DNA of 64,000 nucleotides from contig CM059449.1 of NCBI GenBank assembly GCA_030390025.1, positions 25,792,001 to 25,856,000 on the forward strand. Reading direction: 5' to 3'. This document shows, piece by piece, positions 6,373-46,277 of the stretch. A program made the position numbers and the translations under genes. This stretch comes from Squalus acanthias (taxonomy: Eukaryota). The notes beneath the pieces are model-generated. The model was not told the origin of the DNA. It saw only the letters and a list, made by a program, of their open reading frames with translations, and did no database searches. Every line of letters starts with the position of its first letter. The first letter of the stretch is position 1.

Positions 6373-6468
6373 GATATTTGATGTAAGGTGCAAAGATTGA
6401 AAATAATGTCACCACCATAGCAAGAATTATAGTTGATCGTATATTGGCTGCTGGTTCACATTCTTTAT
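6373..6468 (-). CDS. Hydrophobic (TM) exon of Ig-superfamily gene: (D)KECEPAANIRSTIILAMVVTLFSIFAPYIKY
   Basis: ctattggcag acceptor, gtaagt donor, 96 nt, phase 1-1, open, ~20-residue hydrophobic stretch. Confidence 0.7.
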
Positions 6469-6736
6469 CTGCCAATAGAGATCATCATGTCAATATCTGA
6501 ACTGCAGATCTAATCAGCACATTAGTTGGAAGACTGATTTATTATAGTATATTCAAAGCAAGTACAATAAGTATATGGTGTAACTTGTAGTCTTTGACTT
6601 GTGTACGACTTACAGGTCAGTAAAAAAATTAACTGTATCCTAATTAGAGGCCTCTCAGTTATATTAGCACCACTAGAAATCCTTGGCTCCCAACCTTTCC
6701 AGCTTGTATGATTATCTCCAATGCATTATCTCCAAG

Positions 6737-7037
6737 GCAACACGGTGGCATAGTGGTTAGCACTGTTGATTCACAGCGCCAGGGACCCGGGTTCGAATCC
6801 GGCCTCGGGTGACTGTCTGTGTGGAGTTTGCACATTCTCCCCGTGTCTGCGTGGGTTTCCTCTGGGTGCTCCGGTTTCCTCCCACAGTCCAAAGATGTGC
6901 GGGTTAGGTTGATTTGGCTATGATAGGGGGATTAAATACGTGGGGTTACGGGGATAGGGTGGGATATGTGTCGGTGCAGGCTCGATGGGCCGAAATGGCC
7001 TCTATCTGCACTGTGGGGATTCTGTGATTCTGTGATT
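6737..7037 (+). mobile_element. HE1-like V-SINE
   Basis: Same tRNA head and V-domain as the 4791 copy; tail GATTCTGTGATTCTGTGA. Confidence 0.88.
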
Positions 7038-7074
7038 TGGTATGATGTGCATCTCATTTTTATTACAAAATGAC

Positions 7075-7264
7075 TGGCCGGGACATTCTGTTTTTGCACT
7101 CTGGGCACAGCTCTAGGAGCATGAATCACGAAATTGTGCGTCTCCGGACCGTGATTTTCCAACCATTGATTTTAATTCTCTCAAAATCATGGGCGGCTGG
7201 TGCAGAATTTCCCAATGCTTGCTTCCAGGGTGGAAAGGAGCACTGAAGATGAAAATCCCGGCCA
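7075..7264. mobile_element. Short MITE-like element
   Basis: Imperfect terminal inverted repeats TGGCCGGGACATTC / GAAAATCCCGGCCA. Confidence 0.45.
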
Positions 7265-8037
7265 TCAGTAGGCATTTCTTGTTCATCACTCTTCAAATGT
7301 TTCGCTTCAAAAAATAAAGGAACATAGGCAGTCATCATTTGGAGTGTACGGAGAAACTCTGCAGGGACCGAAAATACCAGAGTCAGAATGTCTGCAGTCT
7401 CTTCATTGGCTTGTTCAAGAACTCACCCAGCATTTACTTAATAGCAATTAAGATTTTGTGGCCTAAAAGATTCACCTCAGCAGCAGAATAATACATGCTG
7501 TCCTTGTAAAACAGCATATTATCTGACGTACTGTGAGCAACGATACGGGAGATATGCTGGTAATGAGTCAATCTTTGATTACTGGTGACTGTGATATAAC
7601 TTTAGAAACTACAGCTGCCAATACTAGCAGATTAATAGTTAACTATTCAAATTTACAGCCAGGCACAAGAGCTTCACTCACTGGGAGAGCCCATTGTAAA
7701 TCCGCCACCATTTTCTGTCCATTAATTTTAATTGACGGAGAGCCGTGAGCAGCACGCACTTGGAGTTTACCCTTGGTGCTTTCGGTGAACCAAGCTCTGA
7801 CACTCTGACGCTGAAAAGGATCAGGTGTATCATGTTAATATGGCATTCCATTGTCTGCTATTTTAATGGAAGGGAGGTCAATCAGTTTAAAACTTGATAA
7901 AAACACTGCTTTATTCTCAGGGGATGGTGGGAGCGAACAAAACAATTAGCTTCACATAACATTCCATGGAACAGTTACAAATTAGTTAAGCTAAAATGCT
8001 CAATGCTTTGCCACAGGGAGTGGTTGAGATGGGAACT

Positions 8038-8915
8038 ATTAAGAACATAAGAAATAGGAGCGGGGTAGGCCATTTGCCGTTCAAGCCTGCTCCTTTTAAT
8101 GCAGTTTCCCGATCTACCATAGCCAACTCGCCCCTCATACCTACGTAGTTTGCTTTGTTTAGATTTAAGACCCTAGTTTTGAATTTAACTAAGTCACTTT
8201 CAAAATTAATATAAAATTCCATCATATTATGGTCACTCTTCCCTAAAGGCCCCTTTACTACAAGGTTATTAATTAACCCTTTCGCATTGCACAATACTAG
8301 ATCTAAAATAGCCTGTTCTCTAGTCGGTTCCTCAACATACTGATCTAGAAAACTATCTTGCATACATTCCATGAATTCGTCCTCCACACTATTACTGCAA
8401 ATTTGGTTTGCCCAGTCTATATGTAGATTAAAGTCCCCCATGATCACTATATTACCCTTGTTATATGCACCTCTAATTTCCTGATTAATACTCTGCCCTA
8501 CATTACAACTACTATTTGGGGAAAATAAACAACACCTATCAATGTTTTCTACCCCTTGCTGTTTCTGAGCTCCATCCAAACTGATTCTACTTCTTGATTT
8601 TCGGAGCTAAGATCCTTTCTCTCTACTGTCTTTATCCCATCCTTTATTATCAGGGCTACCCCTTCTCCTTTTCCATTTTGCCTATCTCTTCTAAAATTTA
8701 AGTATCCTGGAATATTTAGTTCCCAACCTTGGCCACTTTGCAACCACGTCTCCATTATGGCTATTAGATCAAACCTGTTAATTTCTATCTGCGCTATTAA
8801 TTAATCTATTTTGTTGCGAATGCTTTGCGCAGTCAGATATAGTGCCTTTAGCTTTGACTTATTTCTACTTTTCCCTGATGTCATCTTAGTCACTAATGCC
8901 TTATTACCTTCTTGA
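8038..8915 (-). mobile_element. CR1 endonuclease-domain fragment joined to a CR1 3' tail
   Basis: ETWLQ, MGDFNLHIDW, EEPTREQAILDLV and SDHN motifs in ORFs 8549-8755 and 7986-8579. Confidence 0.85.
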
Positions 8916-10082
8916 ATCGCTCAAGGGAAAATTGGATAAATATTTGCAGCAGTAGATGTAATATATTTGGATTTTCAATTTCAAACCAAACACCATTGTG
9001 GGGGCCCGTCACCACAAGGACTGCAGCCATTCTAGGAGAAGGCCCAGCACCAGCTTCTCGGGACAGCTAGGAGCTTGCAATGAATGGGACTGTGCCCTTG
9101 CTGACTACTCCCCCAGATCACAGGAAAGAAAGCTTAGTTGACAATAGGCCTCAATAAAGGCAAGTCATCTTTACTCAATGGTGATTTATGATGTGTGACT
9201 GGCTAGATAAAGGGAATCTTGAACAATCAAGCTTGCAGCGATTCTCTGTGGGGTCTGGCTAAGCTGTCTCACGGGTGGAATGAGGAACACAGTTGCAAGA
9301 ATTCCTGAGCATGGGACCAGTAATGAGGACCGCAGCAGATTGCAGAGAGATACAGACAGGTTAGGAAAGTTGACGGACAGGTGCAGCCTGCACATTAATA
9401 TGGACTGAGTTTGCAAACTCTGTGGAGGTCATGAAGGAGCGATGACATGGGGCTACCATGGCATTGCCACAGTTAGCAGGCGCAATGGCCTGGAGACTCA
9501 ATTGTCTCGGCGTGTGTGCACCCTGAAGGGAAATATGTTTCAACATGAATGTAGAGGGATTACAAGAAGTTGCTGGCAGTACTTAGTGAGGGGCCATCAA
9601 AAAGCGCACAGCCAGACTGGCAGGGTGTGTAGAAATGTGACTGTAGCTGCTGAACATCAGAAGTGGTGTGACGCAGCTTGGAGAAAAAGGGCCGGAGAGC
9701 GTTGATGCAGCTGGATCAAACAGACACTTTTTGTGGGAATGCAGACCTGCTGGTGTCAGAAGGCAGAGGACGAGTAGACATTATTCATTACAATTGACTC
9801 CTACTTCGTATGACGAAGTTATGACAGTGGATGGGAGCAGCTCCGAGGAAATTCACAACCGTAGTAAACTAGTTGGGTTTTTACAATAAAAAGAATTTTT
9901 TTTTTAATGCCAGCCCAAGAATTGCCAAATTTATTGAATTTAAATTCACAGATTGACAAAGTGAGATTGGAACTCACCCGAGTTCTTAGCCTAGTAAACA
10001 TACTACACTGGAATTTATTATGTCAGAAATACTGTATTGTAGAAATACAATTATCAACTGAAAGCAAAGAAACATACAGTAC

Positions 10083-10184
10083 CTTCAGTCCATATCCAAC
10101 ACACAAGTGCAGCAGAGAGACTCAGAAATGAAAGGATTGGGGCATACTGCAAGACTAGTAGTGTATTTTGAAGAAATGGAAGAC
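10083..10184 (-). CDS. Hydrophobic (TM) exon: LPFLQNTLLVLQYAPILSFLSLSAALVCWIWTE
   Basis: ttattgttccag acceptor, G|gtactg donor, 102 nt, phase 1-1, open; lies within ORF 10054-10236. Confidence 0.7.
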
Positions 10185-10384
10185 CTGGAACAATAAGCAA
10201 ATTTGTGTCAATATTACTCCAGCAAATAGTAGTCACACAATCAAAATAATAACTCCGTACAAAGGACCAAAATTTAAAATGGCATAGGCATCATATTTAA
10301 ATGTTTCACAGGTTTTTTTTTAATCAAATTGCAACATTTTTAAACTTTCAACACCAAATTGTGCAAATAACAAATTTCTCTTAC

Positions 10385-10486
10385 TTATTGTTTTGGTCTC
10401 AAACAAGATTGAAATCAAGGCAGCAGTAGAAGCAATCAATGCAGCAATTGTCAATCTCATTATGTACAAAGGCAGAAGTGGAAGAT
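10385..10486 (-). CDS. Hydrophobic (TM) exon: (D)LPLLPLYIMRLTIAALIASTAALISILFETKTI
   Basis: tttttctatttcag acceptor, gtaaga donor, 102 nt, phase 1-1, open. Confidence 0.75.
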
Positions 10487-10516
10487 CTGAAATAGAAAAA
10501 TTATTTTAAACATATG

Positions 10517-11018
10517 GGGGGAAAAATTCAGTATCGCCCCGTTTGGGGTGCAATTATTGGCCGGGCGCAAAGATTAGCACCTGGCGCTAATTATCGCCTC
10601 CGACTGCAAACTTGACTTTTATCGCCCCTGGAGGTGATTGGAGCGCTAAATCAGGCGCTACACATCTGTCTTAAGGCGCAAAGGCAGAGGAGCGAGGCGC
10701 TAACTCAGAGCACTGGCGAAACTCATGTGATGTCAGTCAGCAATGGAACACAGACACAATGGCGCCGGCCAGTTCTTAAAGGGGTGGGTTGATCTTGCTT
10801 TCCATCCACATCCTGCTCATTGCAGCTTGGAATCTTGGCCTGGAGAGACCTGTACATCAAATCTGCTGGAAAGAACAATGGAGAGTACCAGGGAAAGAGC
10901 TCAGAGTGCAACCCCCACACTCTCTTCTAAATCGATACAAGGAAGGGCAAATCAAAATGAACCTGCAAAGTGCTGCTCAGTACCCAAAACTCCTTCACAC
11001 AGCGTTGAATCTCTCCAG

Positions 11019-11055
<37 letters not shown>

Positions 11056-11419
11056 CGTGGTTCAAAAATGTCACCAACAAAAAAAGGCAGGAAGCGGTCG
11101 CCTTTAAATAGCGCTCCCCCAGTCCCTTCCTGACTGCAAAACGCTTCCCTCAACCTGTTGTTGCTAGTGGCAGGCGGTAAGGCAGGGGGCGCCACTCAAT
11201 ATCCGCTCCAGGGCGCTACCGGGGCGTTGCGCACTCGACTGACGTCACGATCTGCTGGCGCAGGAGATCGTGGCGGTAGTGTTTAGCGCCGCCGCAAAAT
11301 GTCTAGTTAATTTCGCAAGTGGTGCAAACATCGCTGTGCCCGGGCGCTAGTTGCTTTGCGCCCCATTAGCGCCCTCTTAAGGCGCTAACGCGAGGCGCAA
11401 CCAACTGAATTTTTCCCCC
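10517..11419. mobile_element. ~900-bp non-autonomous DNA transposon (PIF/Harbinger-like MITE), copy A
   Basis: TIRs GGGGGAAAAATTCAGT / ACTGAATTTTTCCCCC, 3-bp ATG duplication; near-identical copy at 14798-18181. Confidence 0.8.
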
Positions 11420-11499
11420 ATGCCATTTTTAAATCAGATTACAAATTGCAAACAGGGAGTTTTTTTTTCCCCTTAAAAAAAGTGCGGATATCAAGGTCT

Positions 11500-11596
11500 T
11501 AGAAACATAGAAAAATAGGAGCAAGAGTAGGCCATTCGGCCCTTCGAGCCTGCTCCGCCATTCAATATGATCATGGCTGATCCTCTATCTCAATAA
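11500..11596 (-). mobile_element. CR1 3' tail that truncates the IgC2 exon
   Basis: GATCAGCCATGATCATATTGAATGGCGGAGCAGGCTCGAAGGGCCGAATGGCCTACTC on minus strand. Confidence 0.8.
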
Positions 11597-11600
11597 TATA

Positions 11601-11713
11601 TTCTTTTGTCCACAGAATGGAACTCGCATTGCCCGCCGACGCTTGACAGATCAGTTCAATGGTGGTATCCACATCGGTAGAATTACTGCTGATCAGAGGC
11701 TCAGACAGTGGTT
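11601..11713 (-). pseudogene. Truncated IgC2-type exon: (E)PLSEPLISSNSTDVDTTIELICQASAGNASSILWTKE
   Basis: C2-set start (P-x-I, LxC, W-x-K); expected acceptor cccacAG reads cccacAA; remainder replaced by CR1 tail. Confidence 0.7.
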
Positions 11714-11899
11714 TTGTGGGAGGCAATGCATGAACAGTTAAACAGGTCTGAGCATGAAGACAACAGCATTGCTGCACATTGCGTTAGTGCAGTAGTGCAG
11801 TTAACTAACAAGAGCCCTGTCCTTCACACGTACCTCATAATACTTCGACCCTGAGAGCTAAACTTATGACCCCATAATCCTATCACAAAGACTGTCTAA

Positions 11900-12895
11900 C
11901 TCCAACATCACCTGCCTCTGTCCCTACTTCAGCCCAGCTGCTGTTGAAATTCTCATCCATTACCAGTCTCACCTCCAGACTCTACTATTCTAATGCTCTC
12001 CTGGCTGGCTTCCCAACTCATCTAAAACTCTGCTGCCAGTATCCTATCCTGTACCAAGTCCCAGTCACCCATCTCACCCCTGTGCTTGCTGAGGCTCAAT
12101 GTCTTAATTTTTAAATTCTCATCCTCATGTTTAAATCCCATCATGCCTTGCCCCTCTATCTCTGTAACCTCCTCTAATTCTTCAAACCGCCCCCACCACA
12201 CCCCCATTCCTCTGACTCTGTCCTCTTATGCATTTCCACCCTTGCCCACCATTGGTTGCCATGCTTTCAGCCACCTATGCCCACGCTCTGGAATTTCCTC
12301 CATTAAGCCTTCTGCTGCACCACCTCCCTGTCCTCCCTCAAGACCCTCCATAAAACCCACCTCTGACTAAGCATATGGTGACTCTTCCTAATATGCATGG
12401 CTCACTGACAGGAAACAAAGGGTTATGGTTAATGGGTGCTGCACGGATTGGAGAATGGTTGGAAGTGGCGTACCCCAGAGCTCCGTGCTGGGTCCACGAT
12501 ATATAGTGGATTTAGTCTTGGGCATTGGGAGCATGATCTAGACATTTGCTGACGATACAAAAGGAGACAATTGGCAAACAGCAAGGTGGACCATTAAAGA
12601 CTGCAGGAGGACAGATAGATGCAATTTAACGTGAAAACAAGAGAACCACCAGGTGCTAATACATAATTCTCTGGAAGTGCAAATGCAGGTAGATAAAGCC
12701 ATTAAAAAAGGCCAAGAGTGTTTTGTGTCATATAAATAAAGGCACAGGATAAAAGAGCAGACAGGTCATGGTAAGCTAGTACAAGGCAATGATTAGACTA
12801 TAGAGCACTGGGTGCAGTCTTGGGCACCCCATTACGGAAAGAACATTAAAGCCATGGAGAGTGGACTGTCTAGATGCAGAAGGATGACGCTATCA
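11900..12895 (+). mobile_element. Decayed L2-like fragment followed by decayed CR1 RT fragment
   Basis: L2-like CTCCAGACTCTACTATTCTAATGC and 3' end; then GGCGTACCCCAG and TTTGCTGACGATAC CR1 remnants. Confidence 0.55.
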
Positions 12896-12899
12896 ATAA

Positions 12900-13680
12900 T
12901 TGGGTAGTGTAGTGGTTATGTTACTGGACTAGTAGCCACGAGATCAAATCCCACCATGGCAGCATATTAACTAATGTCCTTCAGCGAAGGAAACCTACTG
13001 TCCTTGCCCAGTCTGGCCTATACATGAATCCAGTCCCACACTATTGCAGTTGAATCTTAACTGTCCTCTGAAGTCAGGAGTGTGATGGAATACTCTCCAC
13101 TTGCCTGAATGAGTGCAGCTCCAGCCATACTCCAGAAGCTCGACACCATCCAGGACAAAGCAGCCCGTTGCATTGGCACCCCATCCACCACCTTAAACAT
13201 TCACTCCCTTCATCACCGGCGCATCGTGGCTGCAATCTACAAAATTCACTGCAGCAACTTGCCAAGGCTTCTTCGACATCACCTCCTAAACCCGCAACTT
13301 CTACCACCTAAAGGACAAGGGGAGCAGGCGCATGGAAACACTGCAACCTCCAGGTTCCCCTCCAAGTCACACAGCATCCTGACTTGGAAATATATTGCCA
13401 ATCCTTCACCGTCACTTGGTCAAAATCCTGGAACTCCCTCCCTAACAGCGCTGTGGGAGTACCTTCACAACATGGATTGCAGCAGTTCAAGAAGGCGGCT
13501 CACCACCACCTTCTCAAGGGCAATTAGGGATGGACAATAAATGCTGGCTGTTAGTGACACCCACATCCCGTGAACGAATAAAAAAAAGTGTCTGAGCGAG
13601 CCACTCACTCAGTCAGGTCAACTAGGGATAGGCATTAAACATTGGCCTTGCCAGCGAGGCCCACGTCCCAAGGATGAATA
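12900..13680 (+). mobile_element. tRNA-derived SINE split by a LINE 3' fragment (13075-13587)
   Basis: Head GTGTAGTGGTTATG...TCAAATCCC; ORF 13109-13540 (LDTIQDKAARCIG...IHSLHHRR); both end in similar GGGAT..GGC..TAAA..TGGCC..GCCAGCGA tails. Confidence 0.6.
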
Positions 13681-14797
13681 AAGGAATAAGAATCTATAGT
13701 ACAAGGACACATGTAGGAGGCTGGGACTTATTCCACAGGAGAAAAATAGGCCAAAAAAGAGAGATTTTCATAAGAGTTCTGTTAAAAAAAAAATTATGAT
13801 GGCGTTAATGGGGAAAGACCATTTCCTTTGGTTAGGGAGGTCAGTGATGGGGGAGGGTCATCAATTTAAAGTTATTAACCATGTAAAGGGACTGAGCACA
13901 CTGCCCTATATCTACTTGTGTGGTAGCATAACCTGAGGTGTAACAACAGCACCCTCCTACAACCTGAACTGGAAATTTTTGGTCTTCTGTACATGAACTC
14001 ACATGCAACGCCAATCTTTCCAAAGGTTAGATTCTGCTTTATTTTCAAGACAAAAGTGAATATAAGAGGACCACCTGGAATCAAAACCCAATTATTACAC
14101 TGAGCAGTGCTTCACTTTGTAATAAACTCCCTACACCATTCTACTGGCATTTTCAGAATAATCTGATTTTCTGCACAACTACTGGTTGTAAGATTCTGAA
14201 CCCCAGAATTATGGCCTTCAGTCCAGGGCAGAATGTCCTCTCCCTGCAGTTACAGCTTTTCTTCAGTCAGCCTGACTCCAGTGACATTTTACAAACACTG
14301 ACTACTCCCTCCTCACCCCCCAGGAGGTAGAATTCACCAGCCTAACTTGGCAATGACCCATATTGAGTTCTAATGAAAACAGTTGTCACGGCAGCAATTA
14401 AGTGCGAACCACCACTGGAGTCTTTCACTGTTCCAGCTTGTCCAGAGACTCCGTCTGAATTCCAATCTACATCTCCCAGCCCAGCTGTCCTCTGTATTTA
14501 GCTCATTTGTAGATTTTTATGATATATTACACCAAGGTCCCCCACTGGCAGCATAGTCTGAAATCTCAAAACGTGACATTTAACCTCAATCCTGATTCTG
14601 TCCATCTCTCCCCTCCACCACCCTTCCCCTATTAAATCCTTCCAATGGTCTGATTTGGGAAACAGTTCACCAATATAGCGATGAATGGTGAATCACAATT
14701 CCTGTGGGATTGTTCCAAGGGATAATAGAGAGAGCACAACAAAGTGGAATTAATTCAATTTCTGTCTGTTGGAGATCATGGAGCGTTAAAAGACTAA

Positions 14798-17700: not shown

Positions 17701-18181
17701 GGCATCTGGGGATAATGCGGGAAAGCGGAGTTGAGGCAGAAGATCAGCCATGATCTTATTGAATGGCAGAGCAGGCTCGAAGGGCCGAATGGCCTACTCC
17801 TGCTCTTATTTCTTATGTTATGTTCAAAAATGTCACCAGCAAAAAAAGGCAGGAAGCGGTCGCCTTTAAATAGCGCTCCCCCAGTCCCTTCCTGACTGCA
17901 AAACGCTTCCCTCAACCTGTCGTTGCTAGCGGCAGGCGGTAAGGCAGGGGGCGCCACTCAATATCTGCTCCAGGGCACTACCGGGGCGTTGCGCACACGA
18001 CTGACGTCATGATCTGACGGCGCAGGAGATCGTGGCGGTAGTGTTTAGCGCCGCCGCAAAATGTCTAGTTAATTTCGCGAGCGGTGCAAACATCGCTGCG
18101 CACGGGCGCTAGTTGCTTTGCACCCCATTAGCGCCCTCTTAAGGCGCTAACGGGAGGCGCAACCAACTGAATTTTTCCCCC
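14798..18181. mobile_element. PIF/Harbinger-like MITE copy B, interrupted by CR1
   Basis: 14798-15320 and 17822-18181 match the two halves of 10517-11419; same TIRs. Confidence 0.85.
15321..17652 (+). mobile_element. 5'-truncated CR1 LINE with 735-aa uninterrupted ORF2 part
   Basis: ORF 15362-17569 spans the full RT; catalytic motif reads FADE instead of FADD; a second CR1 tail follows at ~17655-17821. Confidence 0.93.
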
Positions 18182-18877
18182 AAACAGTCTAACTTCTTCG
18201 TATCATGGAGAAAATAGACTTTCCAAGACAAACAAGATGGCTTTGAAGTATCGTGAGAGGAAAGCATAGCTTGTCTTCTGATATGTAAAGTCCTTGTGCA
18301 AAGAAATACATGACAGTCATGACTTCAGCCATGAGCGATTAAAGTGAAACTTTAGGGGCTAGGGTAATAAACATAGGTAGAGGTATCCATTAGCTCCAGT
18401 CTGGAAAGATAACAGTTTATAAGGCCTGTTCAGCAAAGGGTTTAATAACAGTTACATCAGGAAGTCTTATTTAAAGGAAGGCGCTTTGGAGTAATAGATA
18501 CATCATGAAGTCTTATCTATAACACATATCTTTGATGTACAAAAGAGCATGGTTTTCAACAGGTCTTCAAAGGGCACGAAAGATAGAACTTCAAGCCGGA
18601 AAGCCACTCTCTTTTGTCTGGTTAAACTGATCATTCAAACCAGTCATTAATAAAGTCTGTTCCATATTCTCGTCTCCCCTCCCCCGCCTGCTCATCTCCA
18701 CTCCCCAGCCCCTCCCCCCTGCGTCTCATCTCACCTCTTCTCCCTCGCCCCTCGTCTCATCTCCCTCCCGCCCCGTGACTCTTCCCCTGCCCCTCCCCCT
18801 TTTCGCCCCCGTCTCCTGTCGTCCCTCCCATCTCCTCGTCTCCCTCTCAAAGTCCACAAAGTATTGAAAACACTTAC

Positions 18878-19183
18878 CAATGACCTGCAAATGTATTCTT
18901 GTTATCTTTTGTGCATCTATAGTGATGGTATAAACTCCTTCATCGCTGGCTTTTAAATTGTTTACCCTCAGAGACCCATTGGATGTATTAAAATATAAAC
19001 GAGATTTGAAATCTTCATTTAGTTTCACTTTATCGAGATTTGGTTTGTAATCTAAAATAGTAACAGCACTTTTGTTGCATGCGGTGAACTCCCATAGTAC
19101 TTCACTGTTGTTCAGATCAGCTCCATATTCAGGATCCAGTAAAACTGATGAACCAACCATATCAAACACTGCTTGCATTCCAG
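18878..19183 (-). CDS. IgV exon 1, CD2/SLAM/CEACAM-like (no canonical disulfide)
   Basis: ctatcag acceptor, G|gtaagt donor, 306 nt, phase 1-1; VGSSVLL, LWEF, FKSRL, NGSLRVNNLKASDEGVYTITI. Confidence 0.88.
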
Positions 19184-19315
19184 CTGATAGACATAAAAAA
19201 AGCAAATGTAATCATTTAAACTGTGGCAGTGAAACACTGAAATGCAGCAACAAATGTGAAGAAAAATTGTATACATTGTGCCAGCAGATATGCTCGTGAG
19301 GATTTACAACACCAA

Positions 19316-21050: not shown

Positions 21051-21082
21051 TGCAACCCTTACCCCAGGAAAGTGGGATTAGG

Positions 21083-36000: not shown

Positions 36001-36155
36001 CCCCAGAGCCCTGAGCTTCTAACCTCACTACCCTATGGTCCTGACCTCTACCACCACCCCAGGGCCCTGACATTCTCTCTAATCCCCACCACCCCACTCC
36101 ACCCCAGGACCGTAACTTTCTCTCTTCCTCCCACCACCCCGAGTTCCTGACCACC
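33020..36155. repeat. Expanded C-rich minisatellite (37-bp core, 30-47-bp variants), cassette 3
   Basis: Dozens of GGGCCCTGACTTTCTCACTTCTCCCCACTCCACCCC(A/G) units, mainly 33270-35780. Confidence 0.92.
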
Positions 36156-36188
36156 TTGCAACCCTTACCCCAGGAAAGTGGGATTAGG

Positions 36189-39100
36189 CTGCAAATGAGA
36201 CTCCAGGATGGTATGTTGCCTCCCTGGTGCAAGGGTCAAGGATGTCTCGGAGCGGCTGCAGGGCATTCTGGAGGGGGAGGCTGAACAGCCAGTTGTTGTG
36301 GTGCATATAGGTAAAAAACGGGATGAGGTCCTAAAAGCTGAATATAGGGAGTTAGGAGGTAAATTAAAAAATAGGACCTCAAAGGTAGTAATCTCAGGAT
36401 TGATACCGGTGCCACGTGATAGTCAGAATAGAAACAGTAGGATATTTCAGATGAATACGTGGCTAGAGGAATGGTGCAAGGGGGAGGGATTCAAATTCCT
36501 GGGACATTGGAACCGGTTCTGGGGGAGGTGGGACCAGTACAAACTTGACGGTTTGCACCTGGGCAGGACTGGGACCGATGTCCTCGGGGGAGTGTTTGCT
36601 AGTGCTGTTGGGGAGGGTTTAAACTAAAATGGCAGGGGGTTGGGAACCTGTGCAGGGAAACAGAGGAAAGGGAAGCAAGAATAGAAGCAAAAGACAGGAA
36701 GGAGAAAAGCAAAAGTGGAAGGCAGAGAAATCAAGGGTGTAAATCAAACAGGGCCACAGTAAATAATAATTCTAAAAGGACTAAAAGTGTTAAAAAAAAC
36801 AAGCCTGAAGGTTTTGTGTCTTAATGCGAAGAGCATTCGTAATAAGGTGGATGAATTAGCTGCGCAAATAGATGTAAACAGATATAATATAATTGAGATT
36901 ACGGAGACATGGCTCCAGGGTGACCAAGGCTGGGAACTCAACATCCAGGGGTATTCAATATTCAGGAAGGACAGGCAAAAAGGAAAAGGAGGTGAGGTAG
37001 CATTGCTGGTTAAAGAGGAGATTAACATAATAGTAAGGAAGGATATTAGCTCTGATGATGTGAAATCTGTATGGGTAGAGCTGAGAAATACCAAGGGCCA
37101 GAAAACATTAGTGGGAGTTGTATACAGACCCCCAAACAGTAATGCTGAGGTTGGGGATGGCATTAAATGGAAAATTAGAGACGCGTGCAATAAGGGCATA
37201 GCAGTTATCATGGGTGACTTTAATCTACATATAGATTGGGCTAACCAAATTAGTAACAATACTGTGGAGGAGGAATTCCTAGAGTGTATACGGGATGGTT
37301 TCCTGGACCAATATGTCGAGGAACCAACGAGAGATCAGGCCATCTTAGACTGGGTATTATGTAATGAGAAAGGATTAATTAGCAATCTTGTTGTGCAAGG
37401 CCCCTTGGGGAGGAGCGATCATAATATGATAGAATTCTTCATTAAGATGGAGAGTGAAGTAGTTGACTCAGAGACTAGGGTCCTGAATTTAAATAAAGGA
37501 AACTACGATGGTATGAGGCGCGAGTTGGCTAGGATGGATTGGGAAGCGCTACTTAAAGGGTTGACGGTGGATAGGCAATGGCAAACATTTAAAGATCGCA
37601 TAGATGAACTACAGAATTTGTTCATCCCTGTTTGGCATAAAAATAAAACAAAAAAGGTGACTCAACCGTGGCTAACAAGGGAAATTAGGGATAGCATAAG
37701 ATCCAAGGAGAGGACATATCAATTGGCCAGAAAAAGCAGCAAACCTGAGGATTTGGAGCAGTTTAGGATTCAGCAAAGGAGGACAAAGGGATTAATTGAG
37801 AGGGGGAGAAAAGAATATGAGAGTAAGCTTGCAGGGAACATAAAAACTGACTGTAAAAGCTTCTATAGATAAGTGAAGAGAAAAAGATTGGTGAAGTCAA
37901 GCGTAGGTCCCCAGCAGTCAGAATCAGGGGAATTTATAATGGGGAACAAAGAAAAGGCAGACCAATTAAATACATACTTTGGTTCTGTCTTCACAAAGGA
38001 GGTACAAATAAACTCCCAGAGATGTCGGGGAACATAGGGTCTAATGAGGGGGAGGAATTGAATGAAATCAGTATTTGTAGGGAAATGGTGTTAGGGAAAT
38101 TGACGGGATTGAAGGCCGATAAATCCCCAGGGCCTGATAATCTACATCCTAGGGTACTTAAGGAAGTGGCCCTAGAAATAGTAGATGCATTGCTGGTCAT
38201 CTTTCAAAATTCTATAGATTGTGGAACAGTTCCCATGGATTGGAGGGTAGCTAATGTAACCCCACTATTTAAAAAAGGTGGTAGAGAAAAAACGGGGAAT
38301 TATAGACTAGTAAGCCTGACATCGGTAGTGGGCAAAAAGCTAGAGTCCATTATAAAAGATGTAATAGCAGAGCACTTGGAAAACAGTGACAGGATCAGAC
38401 AAAGTCAACATGGATTTACAAAAAGTAAATCATGCCTGACTAATCTACTGGAATTTTTTGAGGATTTAACTGGTAGAATAGATAAGGGAGAACCAGTGGA
38501 TGTGGTGTATTTGGACTTTCAGAAGGCTTTCAATAAGGTCCCGCATAAGAGATTAGCGTGCAAAGTTAAAGCACATGGGATTGGGGGTAAGGTACTGATT
38601 TGGATAGAGAACTGGTTGGCAGACAGGAAGCAAAGAGTTGGAATAAACGGGTCTTTTTCCGAGTGGCAGGCAGTGACTAGTGGGGTACCGCAGGGATCGG
38701 TGCTAGGACCCCAGCTATTCACAATATATATTAATGATCTAGACGAGGGAACTAGATGTAATATCTCCAAATTTGCAGACGACACAAAGCTGGGTGGGCG
38801 TGTGTGCTGTGAGGAGGATGCAGAGAAACTCCAGTATGATTTGGACAGGTTGGGTGATTGGGCAGATGCATGGCAGATGCAGTATAATGTGGATAAATGC
38901 GAGGTTAGCCACTTTGGTGGCAAAAACAGGAAGACAGATTATTATCTGAACGGCAATAGATTGGGAAAAGGGGAAGTGCAACGAGATCTGGGAGTCCTTG
39001 TGCGCCAGTCGCTGAAGGTAAGCATGCAGGTGCAGCAGGCGGTTAAGAAGGCAAATGGTATGTTGGCCTTCATAGCGAGAGGATTCGAGTACAGGAGCAA

Positions 39101-39691
39101 GGATGTCTTGCTGCAGTTGTACAAGGCCTTGGTGAGACCACACCTTGAGTATTGTGTGTAGTTTTGGTCACCTTATCTGAGGAAGGATGTTCTTGCCATG
39201 GAGGGAGTGCAGCGAAGATTTACCAGACTGATACCTGGGATGGCAGGAATGACGCATGAAGAGAGATTGGGTCGATTAGGCTTATATTCGCTACAGTTTA
39301 GAAGAATCAGAGGGGATCTCATTGAAACTTATAAAATTCTAACAGGACTAGACAGACTAGATGCAGGAAGGATGTTCCCGATGGCAGGGAGTCCAGAACC
39401 AGAGGTCACAGTCTAAGGATAAGTGGTAAGCCATTTGGGACTGAGATGAGGAGGAATTTCTTCACCCAGAGAGTGGTGAACCTGTGGAATTCTCTACCAC
39501 AGAAGGCAGTTGAGGCCAATTCATTAAATATATTCAAGAAGGAGATAGATATATTTCTTAAGGCTAAAGGGATCAAAGGATATGGGGAGAAAGCAGGGAC
39601 AGGGTACTGAATTTGGATGATCAGCCATTATCTCATTAAATGGCGGAGCAGGCTCGAGGGGCCGAATGACCTACTCCTGCTCCCATCTTCC
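36189..39691 (+). mobile_element. CR1 LINE, duplicated copy in cassette 3
   Basis: Same junctions as cassettes 1 and 2; ORFs 36208-36627, 36787-37872, 38022-39161. Confidence 0.92.
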
Positions 39692-39945: not shown

Positions 39946-40012
39946 CTTCGAGATCGCAAGGCCGGAGCAGCAGGAGGACAAGCAGCACCCACAGGGGGAA
40001 CTGGTGCTCCAT
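39946..40012 (-). CDS. Signal-peptide exon 3: MEHQFPLWVLLVLLLLRPCDLE
   Basis: 67 nt from ATG to AAG|gtgagg; in frame with IgV exon 3. Confidence 0.82.
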
Positions 40013-40117
40013 CCGAAAGACAAACTAATCCGCGGTCACCACAGGCTCTCAGGACAAGGAAACCGGCATTGTGATGCGGAGCTTCTCCCGGCCGCGTCTC
40101 TCCTGGAGACCAGGTGT

Positions 40118-41437
40118 TGCTGAGTCTGACTGAGCTCACCTGGGCACAGGGGGCGGGGATTAGTCTGACTGAGCTCACAGGGGGCGGGGCTAAGTCTGAC
40201 TGAGCTCACCTGGACACAGGGGGCGGGGCTTAGTCTGACTGAGCTCACCTGGACACGGGGCGGGGCTCAGTCTGCCTGAGCTCACCTGGACACTGGGGGC
40301 GGGGTTGAGTCTGACTGAGCTCACCTGGACACAGGGGGCGGGGCTTAGTCTGACTGAGCTCACCTGGACACAGGGGGCGGGGCTTAGTCTGACTGAGCTC
40401 ACCTGGACACGGGGCGGGGCTTAGTCTGACTGAGCTCACCTGGTCACAGGGCAGGGCTTAGTCTGCCTGAGCTCACCTGGACACGGGGGGCGGGGCTTAG
40501 TCTGACTGAGCTCACCTGAACACGGGGCTGGGCTAAGTCTGACTGAGCTCACCTGGACACAGGGGGTGGGGCTTAGTCTAACTGAGCTCACCTGGACACA
40601 GGGCGGGGCTTAGTCTGCCTGAGCTCACCTGGACACTGGGGGCGGGGCTTAGTCTGACTGAGCTCACCTGGACACAGGGGGCAGGGCTTAGTCTGACTGA
40701 GCTCACCTGGACACGGGGCGGGGCTTAGTCTGCCTGAGCTCACCTGGACACAGGGGGCGGGGCTTAGTCTGACTGAGCTCACCTGGACACTGGGGGCGGG
40801 GCTTAGTCTGACTGAGCTCACCTGGACACAGGGGGCGGGCTTAGTCTGACTGAGCTCACCTGGACACTGGGGGCGGGGCTTAGTCTGACTGAGCTCACCT
40901 GGACACAGGGGGCGGGCTTAGTCTGACTGAGCTCACCTGGACACTGGGGGCGGGGCTTAGTCTGACTGAGCTCACCTGGGCACAGGCGGCGGGGCTTAGT
41001 CTGACTGAGCTCACCTGGGCACAGGGGGCGGGCTTAGTCTGACTGAGCTCACCTGGACACAGGGGGCGGGGCTTAGTCTGACTGAGCTCACCTGGACACA
41101 GGGGGTGGGGCTTAGTCTGACTGAGCTCACCTGGACACAGGGGGCGGGGCTTAGTCTGACTGAGCTCACCTGGGCACAGGGGGCGGTCTTAGTCTGACTG
41201 AGCTCACCTGGACACAGGGGGCGGGGCTTAGTCTGACTGAGCTCACCTGGACACAGGGGGCGGGGCTTAGTCTGACTGAGCTCACCTGGACACAGGGGGC
41301 GGGGCTTAGTCTGACTGAGCTCACCTGGACACAGGGGGCGGGGCTTAGTCTGACTGAGCTCACTTGGACACGGGGCTTCGTCTGACTGAGCTCCCCTGGG
41401 CACAGGGGGCGGGGCTTAGTCTGACTGAGCTCACTTG
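40118..41437. repeat. 39-bp GC-box array, cassette 3 (longest, >30 units)
   Basis: Tandem GGGGCGGGGCTTAGTCTGACTGAGCTCACCTGGACACAG. Confidence 0.9.
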
Positions 41438-41943
41438 GCCATCAGGAAGTCTTATTTAAAGGAAGGAGCTTTCGCGTAAACAACTGCAACTGTGTACAAG
41501 TATAGACAGTCTTCAAAAGATTTGGGAATAGATAAATCGGGGGCGGGGCTTGAAGTCTTATCTATAACACATATCTTTGATGTACAAAAGAGCATGGTTT
41601 TCAACAGGTCTTCAGAGGGCACGAAAGATAGAACTTCAAGCCGGAAAGCCACTCTCTTTTGTCTGGTTGAACTGATCATTCATACCAGTCATTAATAAAC
41701 TCTGTTCCATATTCTCATCTCCCCTCCCTTCCCATCTCCACTCCCCTGCCTCTCTCCCCTCCCCCCGCGTCTCGTCAGCCCCCGCCCCTCATCTCCCTTC
41801 TTCTCCCTCACCCCTCGTCTCCAACCCGCCCCGCATCTCTTCCCCCGCGCCTCCCCTCTTTCTTCCCCGCCCCCTCGTCTCCTGTCGTCCCTCCCATCCC
41901 CTCGTCTCCCTCTCAAAGTCTACAAAGTATTGAAAACACTTAC

Positions 41944-42249
41944 CAATGATCTGCAAATCTATTCTTGTTATCTTTTGTGCATCTATAGTGATGGAATAAA
42001 CTCCTTCATCGCTGGCTTTCAAATTGTTTACCCTCAGAGACCAATTGGATGTATTAAAATATAAACGAGATTTGAAATCTTCATTTGGTTTCACTTCATA
42101 GAGATTTTGTTTGTAATCCAAAATAGTAACAGCACTTTTGTTGCTTGCGGTGAACTCCCATAGTACTTCACTGTTGCTCAGATCAGCTCCATATTCAGGA
42201 TCCAGTAAAACTGATGAACCAACCACACCAAACACTACTTTCATTCCAG
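41944..42249 (-). CDS. IgV exon 4
   Basis: 306 nt, AG/GT intact, open; nearly identical to exon 3 (YKQN vs YKPN). Confidence 0.82.
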
Positions 42250-42384
42250 CTGATAGACATAAAAAAACAAATGCAATTAATTAAACTGTGGCAGTGAAAC
42301 ACTGAAATGCAGCAGCAAATGTGAAGAAAAATTGTATACATTGTGCCAGCAGATATGCTCGTGAGGATTTACAACACCAAAGTT

Positions 42385-44547
42385 AGGCTAGGATGGATTG
42401 GGGAGCGTTACTTAAAGGGTTGACGGTGGGTAGGCAATGGCAAACATTTAAAGATCGCATGGATGAACTGCAGAATTTGTTCATCCCTGTTTGGCATAAA
42501 AATAAAACAAAAAAGGTGACTCAACCGTGGCTAACAAGGGAAATTAGCATAAGATCCAAGGAGAGGACATATAAATTGGCCAGAAAAAGCAGCAAAGCTG
42601 AAGATTGGGAGCAGTTTAGGATTCAGCAAAGGAGGGGAAAGGGATTAATTAAGAGGGGGAAAAAAGAATATGAGAGTAAGCTTGCAGGGAACATAAAAAC
42701 TGACTGTAAAAGCTTCTGTAGATATGTGAAGAGAAAAGGATTGGTGAAGTCAAGCGTAGGTCCCTTGCAGTCAGAATCAGGGGAATTTATAATGGGGAAC
42801 AAAGAAATGGCAGACCAATTAAATACATACTTTGGTTCTGTCTTCACAAAGGAGGACACAAATAAACTCCAAGATGTCCGGGAACATCGGGGCTAATGAG
42901 AGGGAGGAATTGAATGAAATCAGTATTTGTAGGGAAATGGTGTTAGGGAAAATGACGGGACTGAAGGCCGGTAAATCCCCAGGACCTGATAATCTACATC
43001 CTAGGGTACTTAAGGAAGTGGCCCTAGAAATAGTAGATGCATTGCTGGTCATCTTTCAAAATTCTATAGACTCTGGAACAGTTCCCATGGATTGGAGGGT
43101 AGCTAATGTAACCGCACTATTTAAAAAAGGTGGTAGAGAGAAAACGGGGAATTATAGACCAGTAAGCCTGACATCGGTAGTGGGCAAAATGCTAGAGTCC
43201 ATTATAAAAGATGTAATAGCAGAGCACTTGGAAAACAGTGACAGGATCGGACAAAGTCAACATGGATTTACAAAAGGTAAATCATGCCTGACTAATCTAC
43301 TGGAATTTTTTGAGGATGTAACTGGTAGAATAGATAAGGGAGAATCAGTGGATGTGGTGTATTTGGACTTTCAGAAGGCTTTCGATAAGGTCCCGCATAA
43401 GAGATTAGCGTGCAAAGTTAAAGCACATGGGATTGGGGGTAAGGTACTGATTTGGATAGAGAACTGGTTGGCAGACAGGAAGCAAAGAGTTGGAATAAAC
43501 GGGTCTTTGTCCGAGTGGCAGGCAGTGACTAGTGGGGTACCGCAGGGATCGGTGCTCGGACCCTAGCTATTCACAATATATATTAATGATCTAGACGAGG
43601 AAACTAGATGTAATATCTCCAAGTTTGCAGATGACACAAAGCTGGGTGGGCGTGTGTGCTGTGAGGAGGATGCAGAGAAACTCCAGTATGATTTGGACAG
43701 GTTGGGTGATTGGGCAGATGCATGGCAGATGCAGTATAATGTGGATAAATGCGAGGTTAGCCACTTTGGTGGCAAAAACAGGAAGACAGATTATTATCTG
43801 AACGGCAATAGATTGGGAAAAGGGGAAGTGCAACGACATCTGGGAGTCCTTGTGCACCAGTCGCTGAAGGTAAGCACGCAGGTGCAGCAGGCGTTTAAGG
43901 CGGCAAATGGTATGTTGGCCTTCATAGAGAGAGGAATCGAGTACAGGAACAAGGATGTCTTGCTGCAGTTGTACAAGGCCTTGGTGAGACCACACCTTGA
44001 GTATTGTGTGCAGGTCGCCTTAGCTGAGGAAGGACGTTCTTGCCATGGAGGGAGTGCAGCGAAGATTTACCAGACTGATACCTGGGATGGCAGGAATGAC
44101 GTATGAAGAGAGATTGGGTCGATTAGGCTTATATTCGCTAGAGTTTAGAAGAATGAGAGGGGATCTCATTGAAACTTATAAAATTCTAACAGGTCTAGAC
44201 AGACTAGATGCAGGAAGGATGTTCCCGATGGCGGGGGAGACCAGAACCAGAGGTCACAGTCTTAGGATAAGGGGTAAGCCATTTAGGACTGAGATGAGGA
44301 GGAATTTCTTCACCCAGAGAGTGGTGAACCTGTGGAATTCTCTACCACAGAAGGCAGTTGAGGCCAATTCATTAAATATATTCAAGAAGGAGATAGATAT
44401 ATTTCTTAAGGCTGAAGGGATCAAGGGATATGGGGAGAAAGCAGGGACAGGGTACTGAATTTGGATGATCAGTCATGATCTCATTAAATGGCGGAGCAGG
44501 CTCGAGCGGCCGAATGGCCTACTCCTGCTCCTATCTTCTACGCTTCT
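42385..44547 (+). mobile_element. 5'-truncated CR1 at a cassette-4-specific site
   Basis: AAGTT TSD (42380-42384 and 44548-44552); RT ORFs with stop and frameshifts. Confidence 0.9.
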
Positions 44548-44819
44548 AAGTTCTGATTGGTCCCCTTGAAGGACATGACACACCCAGCAATTTGTTTGGA
44601 ATGAGTAGTTAGAAACTGCCTGCCTGAGTAACCAAGTACTTTGCAACGTGTAACTTGAGCCATTCATTCTGACTGCCAGGCTCCAGACGCAGCTCACAGC
44701 ACTGCTTTCAGAGAACAGACAGAGCTCACACTCGCGGGTTAGGAGCTTCTCCCCGTCCCCCAGTTCCTGAGCTTCCCCCACACCCCGAACAAGTTCCTGA
44801 TCTTTCCCCTCTCCAACAA

Positions 44820-45440
44820 GATCCTGACTTCTCTTTTCCCACCCCGGGGCCCTTACCTTCATCTCCCCCACCAGCCCAGGGCCCTGCCCTTCTACTCCCT
44901 CACCCCAAGGCCCCGACCTTCTCCCCCCTACCACACAAATCCGGTGCCCTGACCTTCTCTCCCATCCCCTGACCTTCACCTTTCACCACCCCCCACCCGC
45001 CCCAAATCCCGGGGCCCTGACCTTCTCTCTCACCCGCCCATCCTCCCAGAGACCTGAACTTCTACTCCACCAGCCCTGACTTTCTCTCTTCTCCCCACTA
45101 CCCCACTCCAACCCAGGGCCCTGACATTCTCTCTTCTTCCCAGCACCCACTAAACCCCGGAGCCCTGACCATCTCTCTCTCCCCCACACCCCCAAGCCCT
45201 GACTGTCTCCCCTCCTCACTACCCTATGGTCCTGACCTCCACCACCACCCCAGGACCCTGACCTTCTCCCCTCCTCACTTGCCTATGGTCCTGGCCTCCA
45301 CCACCACCCCAGGACCCTGACCTTCTCTCTTCTCCCCACCACCCCACTCCACCCCAAGGCCCTGACTTTCTCTCTTCTCCCCACCGTCCCACTCCACCCT
45401 GGGAACCTAACTTTCTCTCTTCCCCACCCCGAGTTACTGA
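44820..45440. repeat. C-rich degenerate minisatellite, cassette 4
   Basis: CCCTGAC(C/T)TTCTC motifs. Confidence 0.7.
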
Positions 45441-45727
45441 CCTTCTTGCAACCCTTACCCCTGGAAAGTTGGATTAGACTGGATAGCTCCTTGTCGGCCG
45501 GCACGGACACGATGGGCCGTAAATTTCGACGATTCTATGCTGCTCCTGGGGGATGTGACCAAACCCGGGCCTTCCCCAGGGCAGGAGCAGCGCCCCTGGG
45601 GGACATTCCCGGCCGCTGCAGGGAGCTCCAGGCGCCATTTTGGGCCCACCTTTCCCGGCCGCGGTCACAGAGCCTGCGGCGCAGCCGTTCTCCGTTTATA
45701 ACCCCGTTCCCCACTTTAGTTCCTCAC

Positions 45728-45794
45728 CTTCGGGATCGCAAGGCCGGAGCAGCAGGAGGACGACCAGCACCCACAGGGGGAACTGGCGCTCCAT
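45728..45794 (-). CDS. Signal-peptide exon 4: MERQFPLWVLVVLLLLRPCDPE
   Basis: 67 nt from ATG to AAG|gtgagg; in frame with IgV exon 4. Confidence 0.82.
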
Positions 45795-45883
45795 CCGAAA
45801 GACAAACTACTCCGCGGTCACCACAGGCTCTCAGGAAACGGAATGCGGCAGTTTGATGCGGAGCTTCTCCTGGAGACCCGATG

Positions 45884-46277
45884 TTGCTGAGTCTGAATGA
45901 GCTCACCTGGGCACAGGGGGCGGGGCTTAGTCTGACTGAGCTCACCTGGGCACAGGGGGCGGGGCTTAGTCTGAATGAGCTCACCTGGGCACAGGGGGCG
46001 GGGCTTAGTCTGAATGAGCTCACCTGGGCACAGGGGGCGGGGCTTAGTCTGAATGAGCTCACCTGGGCACAGGGGGCGGGGCTTAGTCTGACTGAGCTCA
46101 CCTGGGCACAGGGGGCGGGTCTTAGTCTGACTGAGCTCACCTGGGCACAGGGGGCGGGGCTTAGTCTGACTGACAGCACTGAATATAGGGGCGGTGCTTA
46201 ATCTGACAGCCCTCCTGGACACAGGGGGCGGGTCTTAGTCTGACTGACAGCACTGAACACGGGGGCGGGGCCTAGTC
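45884..46277. repeat. 39-bp GC-box array, cassette 4 (remnant units continue at 50620-50700)
   Basis: About 10 units; two more GGGGCGGGGCTTAGT units lie beyond the inserted CR1. Confidence 0.85.

Follow-up and report, generated by a model that had tools for sequence, protein, structure and literature searches.

The minus strand of the stretch analysed here (the window, 64,000 nucleotides free of N letters) appears to carry a copy of a shark immune-type receptor gene that has undergone partial tandem amplification, a paralogue decaying yet still transcribed, a reading to which we assign a probability of about 0.55. A 5' module, made up of a 39-bp GC-box minisatellite, a leader exon, a LINE-bearing intron 1, an IgV exon and ~450 nt beyond it, is present four times, the four modules lying in tandem upstream of a single damaged 3' part. 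The features, in descending order of position, are as follows.

45886–46277, minus strand: 39-bp GC-box minisatellite of unit 1, 10.2 copies (TRF and pattern search)
45728–45794, minus strand: leader exon L1, 67 nt, ATG to GT, phase 1
45179–45327 and 26953–27223: shorter arrays of the C-rich 37-bp minisatellite (TRF)
42381–44548, plus strand: 5'-truncated LINE in intron 1 of unit 1, antisense to the gene (homology, ORFs)
41944–42249, minus strand: IgV exon V1, 306 nt, phase 1-1
40119–41446, minus strand: 39-bp minisatellite of unit 2, 34.8 copies (TRF and pattern search)
39946–40012, minus strand: leader exon L2, 67 nt, phase 1, with a 6-codon upstream ORF in its 5' flank
36100–39690, plus strand: LINE (endonuclease and reverse transcriptase) in intron 1 of unit 2, antisense to the gene (homology, ORFs; Pfam Exo_endo_phos 1.9e-9, RVT_1 1.7e-31)
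33278–35813: C-rich 37-bp minisatellite in intron 1 of unit 2, 64.8 copies (TRF)
32314–32619, minus strand: IgV exon V2, differing from V1 at 2 of 306 bases
31188–31816, minus strand: 39-bp minisatellite of unit 3, 16.8 copies (TRF and pattern search)
31014–31081, minus strand: leader exon L3, 68 nt, with a one-base insertion
27183–30758, plus strand: LINE in intron 1 of unit 3 (homology, ORFs)
25997–26302, minus strand: IgV exon V3, 306 nt
25013–25550, minus strand: 39-bp minisatellite of unit 4, 13.8 copies (TRF and pattern search)
24840–24906, minus strand: leader exon L4, 67 nt, phase 1
20990–24586, plus strand: LINE in intron 1 of unit 4 (homology, ORFs)
18878–19183, minus strand: IgV exon V4, the most diverged copy (16–17 of 306 bases)
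14798–18182: second copy of the ~900-nt stretch 10517–11420, 95–96% alike and split by a LINE
15326–17819: the LINE that splits it, with a 735-aa open frame (RVT_1 4.8e-30)
11577–11717, minus strand: IgC2 exon remnant, of which the first 39–46 codons remain; AA in place of the acceptor AG, no donor
11498–11593, minus strand: LINE 3'-tail fragment interrupting the IgC2 exon (similarity to LINE 3' ends)
10385–10486, minus strand: membrane helix 1 exon, 102 nt, AG/GT, phase 1-1
10083–10184, minus strand: membrane helix 2 exon, 102 nt, AG/GT, phase 1-1
6373–6468, minus strand: membrane helix 5 exon, 96 nt, AG/GT, phase 1-1

The original prediction had proposed four tandem minus-strand units; all 12 of its exon coordinates were checked on that strand, and the units were confirmed. 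The 306-nt V exons have intact AG and GT in all four cases, with '...ctatcag' before and 'gtaagtg' after, and each, read from its third base, is open for 101 codons, with phase 1 at both ends. Every leader exon starts with ATG, encodes a hydrophobic leader and then runs into 'gtgagg'. The further claim that all intact junctions are in phase 1 holds for the V exons and for three of the four leaders but not for L3, whose one-base insertion places it out of frame with V3. The GC-box array noted in each unit proved to be the 39-bp minisatellite, which lies just 5' of each leader exon: the 49 matches to its pattern (≤3 mismatches; 0 expected from 100 shuffles) are all on the minus strand and confined to the four arrays, and neither TRF nor the pattern search found an array after V4. 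Lastly, as had been noted, no recombination signal follows the V exons (the heptamer CACAGTG/CACTGTG is absent within 120 nt downstream of all four, and each ends at a GT donor), in contrast to rearranging antigen-receptor V segments.

Pfam V-set is over its cut-off in all four V exons. The canonical cysteine pair is absent, there being no cysteine in V1–V3 and one in V4, and from its sequence the domain would be of the cysteine-less CD2/SLAM type. The nearest solved structures are CD48 (5.9e-4) and SLAMF6 (1.1e-3), yet contactin-1 (3.2e-3) and CD86 (4.6e-3) are also matched, and Pfam Receptor_2B4 reaches 13.1–17.6 bits against a cut-off of 21 in three of the four copies and is unlisted for V3. 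Proteins of the CD2/SLAM family (CD48, SLAMF6, CD58, CD2), which give the best solved-structure matches, share with the locus a V-set domain without the canonical cysteine pair, and with its relatives the order of V then C2, but resemble it only weakly (E 6e-4 to 0.05). CD2/SLAM proteins are anchored by a single pass or by GPI, and SLAM tails bear ITSM motifs, whereas the anchor in the family to which the locus belongs is multi-pass, neither a single helix nor GPI.

That family is a large and unstudied one of elasmobranchs, whose members consist of a leader, one to four IgV domains, an IgC2 domain and about five membrane helices. Matches at E ≤ 1e-3 number 307 proteins, with 13 of the top 20 matching in at least two stretches, and in a separate search 93 of 93 matches came from sharks, rays or skates. 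The best match, P0001 (E 1.1e-75, 68% identity over query residues 1–100), aligns along the full length of the V domain; the V exons are 59–70% identical to their nearest members, the best value being 69.7% among 224 proteins. In relatives, tandem V domains are followed by IgC2 and then by hydrophobic segments, placing an Ig ectodomain on about five membrane helices: IgC2 is kept in all 22 aligned relatives, and five hydrophobic segments follow the leader in five of the eight scanned, with four to six after the Ig part. Pfam V-set_CD47 yields no sequence link: it gives E 0.012 on the IgC2 part of relatives, under its cut-off, and all 60 solved-structure matches among those listed fall on the Ig part. 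Members such as XP_067830133.1 (Heptranchias perlo) and LOC127585946 (Pristis pectinata) illustrate the family, which goes under the source names 'uncharacterized', 'HEPACAM-like', 'CD48 antigen-like' and 'CEACAM1-like'; a full-text literature search found no paper on an elasmobranch leader-IgV(n)-IgC2-multi-pass family.

This family is matched by the V exons, by the beginning of IgC2 and by the helix 1, 2 and 5 exons; the locus differs in that a leader exon and a GC-box array were copied along with the V exon, in its broken IgC2, and in the helix 3–4 and tail exons, which were not found within the window. Only one set of downstream exons exists, as predicted, and its three membrane exons retain AG and GT, but the predicted exon at 11601–11713 has neither splice site. 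What lies there is the IgC2 remnant, with an Ig_3 match under the Pfam cut-off (E 0.0057) and a match to P0001 that is limited to residues 228–269 and ends after 269; the complete IgC2 domain that follows the V domains in the family is missing here. The LINE tail that interrupts it is 86–92% alike to the LINE 3' ends at 24502–24586, 44464–44550, 17731–17819 and 5131–5215. The family's five or so membrane helices are represented by exons for helices 1, 2 and 5 only: helix 1 gives a weak family match (profile E 8.3e-4), helix 2 matches P0001 residues 363–396 (E 1.2e-10; profile E 8.1e-10), and read-through from helix 5 into the intron adds two codons before a stop. Profile positions 164–211, 291–359 and 390–434 matched nothing on the minus strand of 1–19500, and no membrane-exon-like frame was found among the 70 AG..GT candidates lying between 10082 and 6469 (of the 15 listed, the top six are the LINE endonuclease frame), although a very diverged helix 3–4 exon could have escaped detection because membrane exons are poorly conserved.

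RNA-like contigs were aligned, at ≥90% identity, to the stretch of unit 1 only. A 196-nt contig of X1 equals 45728–45923 with no other letters, ending exactly at the L1 donor and reaching the proximal copy of the unit 1 minisatellite. Bins over V exons are covered in both X1 and X2, while three bins at 41447–41932 and three at 44849–45334 stand at zero, the contigs lying over the V1 exon and being absent from its unique flanks, and in both the contigs show V2-type and V3/V4-type letters. The LINE of unit 1, whose sister copies carry RVT_1, has very high depth in four of four runs. Transcription of the locus is probable, since the RNA-like contigs are otherwise confined to L1 and the V exons, with ends at splice sites; it would begin at least at unit 1, inside the proximal repeats or a short way upstream of them. 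The contigs of the unit 1 stretch, outside which the downstream exons lie, showed no junction from V to V or from V to 10486.

Since the V exons possess acceptors and the leader exons do not, transcripts would be expected to splice in the order L1-V1-V2-V3-V4 and then to skip the dead IgC2 remnant to the acceptor at 10486; the remaining exons are all in phase 1-1, so the frame would be kept when the lost parts are skipped. The resulting product, without IgC2 and without two membrane helices, is in our view non-functional or marginal, and we regard the locus as a young paralogue undergoing decay. It is also conceivable, if unlikely, that the gene works from a single active promoter: it would start at L1, ignore inert internal leaders and make a four-V receptor on a reduced three-helix anchor lacking IgC2. 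Relatives are annotated with two, three or four V domains in series, joined at homologous exon borders, and also bear recent tandem Ig-exon copies joined in series, with isoforms that skip one; V1–V4 each keep an open frame, good splice sites and a consistent phase, such a transcript would fit the L1 contig and the presence of V contigs from different copy types, and an upstream ATG is present in units 2–4 and absent from unit 1 alone. Against this stand the retention of IgC2 in all aligned relatives and of five hydrophobic segments in five of the eight scanned, the lack of an observed junction, and the alteration of the copies at family-invariant residues with no purifying selection.

Clustered protocadherins and UGT1A join variable first exons, which lack acceptors, to shared constant exons. 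The locus resembles them in its tandem variable units, each with a possible promoter, upstream of one shared exon set, but has two exons per unit, an incomplete constant part and only four near-identical units. The original prediction drew this analogy, and it fails: each V exon is internal, with a pyrimidine tract and an intact AG, so that transcripts from upstream should include the downstream V exons. Exclusive choice, in which a single cassette is picked to supply the only V spliced to the constant exons, would suit the tandem arrangement and the GC-rich array 5' of each first exon; it is nevertheless most improbable, as the variable part is split between a first exon and an internal V exon whose strong acceptor a cap-proximal rule cannot bypass, and as V1 and V2 products differ by one residue, such that choosing between them adds next to no diversity. 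The second option of the prediction, V chains of varying length, is instead the default expectation of splicing and agrees with relatives annotated with 2–4 V domains in series.

Nested promoter choice, where each GC-box array is a promoter and receptors started at L1, L2 or L4 have four, three or one V domain, with IgC2 gone and the anchor cut down to three helices, is a more doubtful proposition than the single promoter. In such a scheme the number of V domains would follow from the start site, acceptors being present on V exons and absent from leader exons. The four arrays and leader 5' flanks are alike (93% mean column identity over 277 columns), L1, L2 and L4 retain an ATG, an open leader and a donor, and the 5' UTR of unit 1 extends into its array. 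On the other hand, L3 is frameshifted, units 2–4 carry an upstream ATG, and all objections to a functioning gene apply as well. One contig supports transcription of L1 with its 5' UTR, in an alignment at ≥90% identity that covered unit 1 only, which the L2–L4 flanks resemble at no more than ~89%.

The units are distinct copies, differing by 0.7–14% according to segment and never identical repeats. False duplication in assembly could be suspected from units 1 and 2, with just 8 differences across ~1.1 kb, and from the long minisatellites and LINEs that hamper assembly of such a region; given a window without N, this degree of difference, a LINE in unit 1 positioned differently from that in the other units, arrays of 10 to 35 copies, and contigs of independent runs that bear both V2-type and V3/V4-type letters, we consider it highly implausible. 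On the amplification reading, the minisatellite arrays at the unit borders would be the likely substrate for unequal crossing-over, and the 1.1-kb near-identical tract would point to later gene conversion between units 1 and 2.

Differences among the V exons (0.7–5.6%) compare with 1.7–3.8% in the intron LINE, and the V copies thus seem to diverge neutrally, as fast as introns, with no sign of purifying selection. Where computable, pN/pS is 0.96–1.92 in five of six V pairs, on few changes (2 synonymous, 7–14 non-synonymous). Of 18 variable residue columns, 4–5 fall on family-conserved columns (the 31 kept in at least 20 of 22 relatives) against ~5.5 expected, and V1 and V2 have W at a glycine that is invariant in all 22 relatives.

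The fallback of the original prediction, a plain partial tandem duplication of a decaying gene, is therefore the best supported reading, with IgC2 destroyed, two helix exons missing, L3 frameshifted and the V copies showing no sign of purifying selection. Several points count against decay. No V exon has lost its open frame or its splice sites, and the same is true of three of the four leader exons; the phase 1-1 of every remaining exon keeps the frame when lost parts are skipped; and exons are transcribed, apparently spliced, in at least two runs. The tail exon could sit beyond the window start, and one annotated isoform of a relative stops directly after helix 5 (P0007 vs P0151), as read-through here would. 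With so few changes, a pN/pS above 1 is also what diversifying selection could produce in a receptor that works.

Immune receptors usually gain domains when phase-1 Ig exons are copied in tandem; Ly9/SLAMF3 and other Ig receptors were enlarged by such exon duplication, the Ig exons alone being copied and not the promoter or leader. The locus shares with them tandemly duplicated phase-1 Ig exons that would be read in series, but here, in a less usual form, the copied block holds a promoter-like repeat and a leader exon as well, and the same event therefore adds both domains and several possible start sites. If internal starts are used, this would be a simple path from duplication to a receptor set of graded length, and if promoters are nested as outlined above, ectodomain length would be tuned without DNA rearrangement or alternative splicing. 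As it stands, the locus looks like a decaying gene copy rather than a novel mechanism of receptor diversity, and, with its 3' damage and seemingly neutral divergence, it offers a snapshot of birth-and-death turnover within a shark receptor family that is expanding fast. A more rewarding subject may be that family, which combines a cysteine-less CD2/SLAM-like ectodomain with about five helices across sharks and rays.

On the minus strand of the window four units stand in tandem, each consisting of an array of a 39-bp minisatellite, an ATG leader exon (L1 to L4) about 100 nt downstream of the array, an intron of 3.5–7.3 kb and a 306-nt exon for an IgV domain (V1 to V4). The arrays of units 1 to 4 hold 10.2, 34.8, 16.8 and 13.8 copies of a repeat unit that includes GGGGGCGGG, which we take to be a GC box. 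Allowing up to three mismatches, the 39-mer has 49 matches, all on the minus strand and confined to the four arrays (100 shuffles gave none), and this pattern search of the window found no fifth array after V4. Each of the four V exons is preceded by a pyrimidine tract and AG, followed by GTAAGT, and has 101 open codons in phase 1. The layout put forward in the original prediction, four minus-strand units each with an array, an ATG leader and a 306-nt IgV exon bounded by AG and GT, is confirmed in the sequence. Its further statement that all intact junctions are phase 1 holds for the V exons, the 67-nt leaders (three of the four) and the remaining downstream exons, but not for L3, which a one-base insertion lengthens to 68 nt and shifts out of the V3 frame. 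In units 2–4 the flank 5' of the leader (40013–40118, 31082–31187 and 24907–25012) carries an upstream ATG with a 6-codon frame; that of unit 1 is without one and has a 15-nt deletion nearby relative to units 2–4. On the gene strand the 39-bp repeats (25013–25550 and the three sister arrays) show a C-rich tract, CAG and directly GTGAGC, presumably an acceptor-like site abutting a donor-like one in each repeat, and the arrays could feed odd splicing.

This exon structure bears directly on how the V exons could be used. In protocadherin and UGT1A loci the variable exons are all first exons, of which the cap-proximal one alone is used. The V exons here differ in having both acceptor and donor and in sitting behind leader exons that have no acceptor; as internal exons they do not bear out the proposed analogy with those loci, and exclusive choice of that kind was rejected. 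Rearranging V segments were likewise rejected: as had been predicted, no recombination signal follows the V exons, the heptamer being absent from the 120 nt after each of the four and every V exon ending at a splice donor. Because the leader exons have donors without acceptors and the V exons have both, serial splicing from unit 1 is expected, and a transcript starting there would be spliced L1-V1-V2-V3-V4 and on to the acceptor at 10486, skipping a dead remnant of IgC2.

The 3' part that the units share is damaged. Missing exons were sought by tblastn with four relatives, by phmmer with eight, by a profile of 16 sequences run with every filter disabled, and by scanning for open frames between AG and GT; these four methods found nothing beyond five pieces, among them the following.

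Remaining pieces of the shared 3' part
11577–11717, minus strand: IgC2, first 39–46 codons; family matches by tblastn, phmmer and profile
10385–10486, minus strand: helix 1 exon; weak family match
10083–10184, minus strand: helix 2 exon; family match
6373–6468, minus strand: helix 5 exon; family match

The IgC2 remnant has AA before it where AG is expected, and runs into an 86–96-nt piece matching the 3' ends of LINE copies. Run with filters off, the family profile matched nothing on the minus strand of 1–19500 for the latter half of IgC2, for the stretch of helices 3–4 or for the tail. No membrane-like exon was present among the 70 candidate open AG..GT frames in 6469–10082, which include LINE-derived frames, the best six of the 15 listed being an endonuclease frame. 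A tail exon could lie beyond the window start. Reading past 6373 gives two codons and then a stop, and an annotated isoform of a relative ends similarly (P0007 compared with P0151, both among the relatives P0001–P0224). The remaining exons are all phase 1-1, so that the frame is kept when the lost parts are skipped.

The V copies do not look constrained either. Divergence is 0.7–5.6% in the V exons as against 1.7–3.8% in the intron LINE and 2.1–3.8% in the next intron segment, and pN/pS is 0.96–1.92 in the five of six pairs for which it is computable, with 2 synonymous and 7–14 non-synonymous changes. Among 22 relatives 31 columns are conserved in 20 or more, and 24 of these are kept by all four copies. 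Each copy departs from a conserved column: V1 has Q for P, V3 has Y for D and V4 has L for P, and V1 and V2 have W in place of a glycine kept in 22 of 22 relatives. Variable columns fall on conserved ones in 4–5 of 18 cases, where about 5.5 would be expected by chance. The absence of indels in the V exons is not significant because the introns have 0.5–5.7 gap openings per kb. These small numbers fit neutral drift, and diversifying selection may be compatible with them as well. Copies that differ at 2–17 of 306 bases make for weak selection tests. From the 3' damage and the drift, we favour reading the locus as a young, still-transcribed paralogue in decay, at a probability of roughly 0.55, and it is the fallback of the original prediction, partial duplication of a decaying gene, that gains by this. 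Set beside the same damage and drift, a working four-V gene, for all its open V frames and splice sites, seems unlikely.

As to transcription, contigs of three runs that may be RNA (X1, X2 and X4) and of X12, probably DNA of a relative, were aligned on 41447–46300 at a 90% threshold; the kind of run is a guess, no listed run being recorded as RNA, and contig depth figures were not used for ranking. In X1 and X2 both bins over V1 are covered, with three bins at 41447–41932 and three at 44849–45334 at 0; in X12, 29 of 30 bins are covered. A 196-nt contig of X1 corresponds to 45728–45923 with zero differences, ending exactly at the L1 donor and extending into the proximal repeat, and a 109-nt contig of X2 corresponds to 41965–42073. 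The fit of a 254-nt X2 contig ends exactly at the V donor, with 151 nt further, and a paralogue is its probable source, given 8 differences over 103 nt. Letters found on V1 include those of V2/V3/V4 (G at 42108) and of V3/V4 (C at 42043, T at 42177), and V1/V2-type contigs occur too, so the RNA-like data contain more than one V copy type. The letter that V1 itself has at 42108 is absent from the contigs, which drop minor variants. Each unit has its own array and leader, and shorter V chains would result if transcription began at L2 or L4; the contig evidence covers L1 alone among the leaders, at a 90% threshold against a likeness to unit 1 of about 89% for the L2–L4 flanks, and we hold such nested promoter use to be slightly less likely than a working four-V gene.

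Units 2, 3 and 4 have a common layout, in which intron 1 begins with an opposite-strand LINE that fills its first half and encodes an endonuclease (Pfam E 1.9e-9) and a reverse transcriptase (1.7e-31), followed by a C-rich 37/45-bp minisatellite; the LINE copy of unit 1 is shorter and at another place in the intron. The leader flank of unit 1 is about 10–11% different from those of the other units, which differ mutually by 3–6%. V1 and V2 differ at 2 of 306 bases, and the surrounding tract of about 1.1 kb (41300–42380 and 31670–32750) has 8 differences, as against 3.5–11% for the rest of both units. Such closeness suggests a later event, either gene conversion or a secondary copy, and the tract is likely one of gene conversion. 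Unequal crossing-over between arrays is a plausible driver of unit copying, since the arrays stand at unit borders. The window contains zero N bases, and an assembly artefact as the source of the extra units was judged unlikely.

Other repeats mark the region. About 900 nt just upstream of the helix 1 exon (10517–11420) are repeated, at 95–96% identity, at 14798–15317 and 17822–18182, this second copy being interrupted by a LINE. The LINE at 15326–17819 has an unbroken 735-aa frame with reverse transcriptase. Because this element reaches very high depth in each of the four runs examined, its family may be recently active. The whole locus is flanked by two repeats in inverted orientation (3–2245 and 46276–48543), which are about 74% alike and carry reverse transcriptase, and a 26-bp satellite unrelated to the gene (about 195 copies, 86% matches) occupies 52983–58065.

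The translations of V1–V4 are all Pfam V-set matches above the cut-off, with E from 2.1e-8 to 1.3e-7, and the canonical cysteine pair is absent from them. Their best relatives of solved structure are, weakly, CD48, SLAMF6, CD58 and CD2, with contactin-1 and CD86 scoring in the same range. Against 1.84 billion representatives the V query matched 307 proteins at E≤1e-3 (best identity 68%), and 13 of the top 20 match the single V in at least two stretches. In the relatives examined a leader and one to four V domains precede IgC2, which is followed by hydrophobic segments; 5 of 8 scanned have exactly five of these after the leader. Their source names include 'uncharacterized', 'HEPACAM-like' and 'CD48 antigen-like'. 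None of the collected relatives exceeds 70% identity to the window, and the window gene is therefore without a model among them. For the relatives' membrane part the searches run found no Pfam, solved-structure or Atlas relatives: the ESM Atlas gave no usable feature match and, as structures, bacterial proteins at TM 0.31–0.50 by query, and among the best 60 of 414 matches the solved-structure profile search hit the Ig part only. Precomputed Pfam lists of the relatives name PF28321 and PF28299; our own Pfam scan reported neither. The final 42 bases of V1 gave no match in a metagenome scan. The V2 exon alone, as a query for short junction-spanning ORFs, gave no candidate among proteins of 56–177 residues, a range so limited that the blank says little.

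A search with residues 1–330 of P0001, one of the relatives, returned 93 proteins, all from sharks, rays and skates. The family spans at least 17 elasmobranch genera. Its genes are numerous per genome and bear unrelated names from automatic annotation, and among the entries returned by full-text literature searches there was no paper on such a receptor family. Tandem Ig exons recur within it. As read from the sequences, the two V domains of P0001 are about 90% alike, and they are joined where the V exons of the window have their homologous borders; a Pristis gene has one V-V isoform and one with a single V, both with the same leader; and in a Heterodontus gene IgC2 is doubled and one isoform is without V. 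These are pipeline gene models, and in them a single leader precedes the duplicated phase-1 Ig exons, which are either read one after another or skipped.
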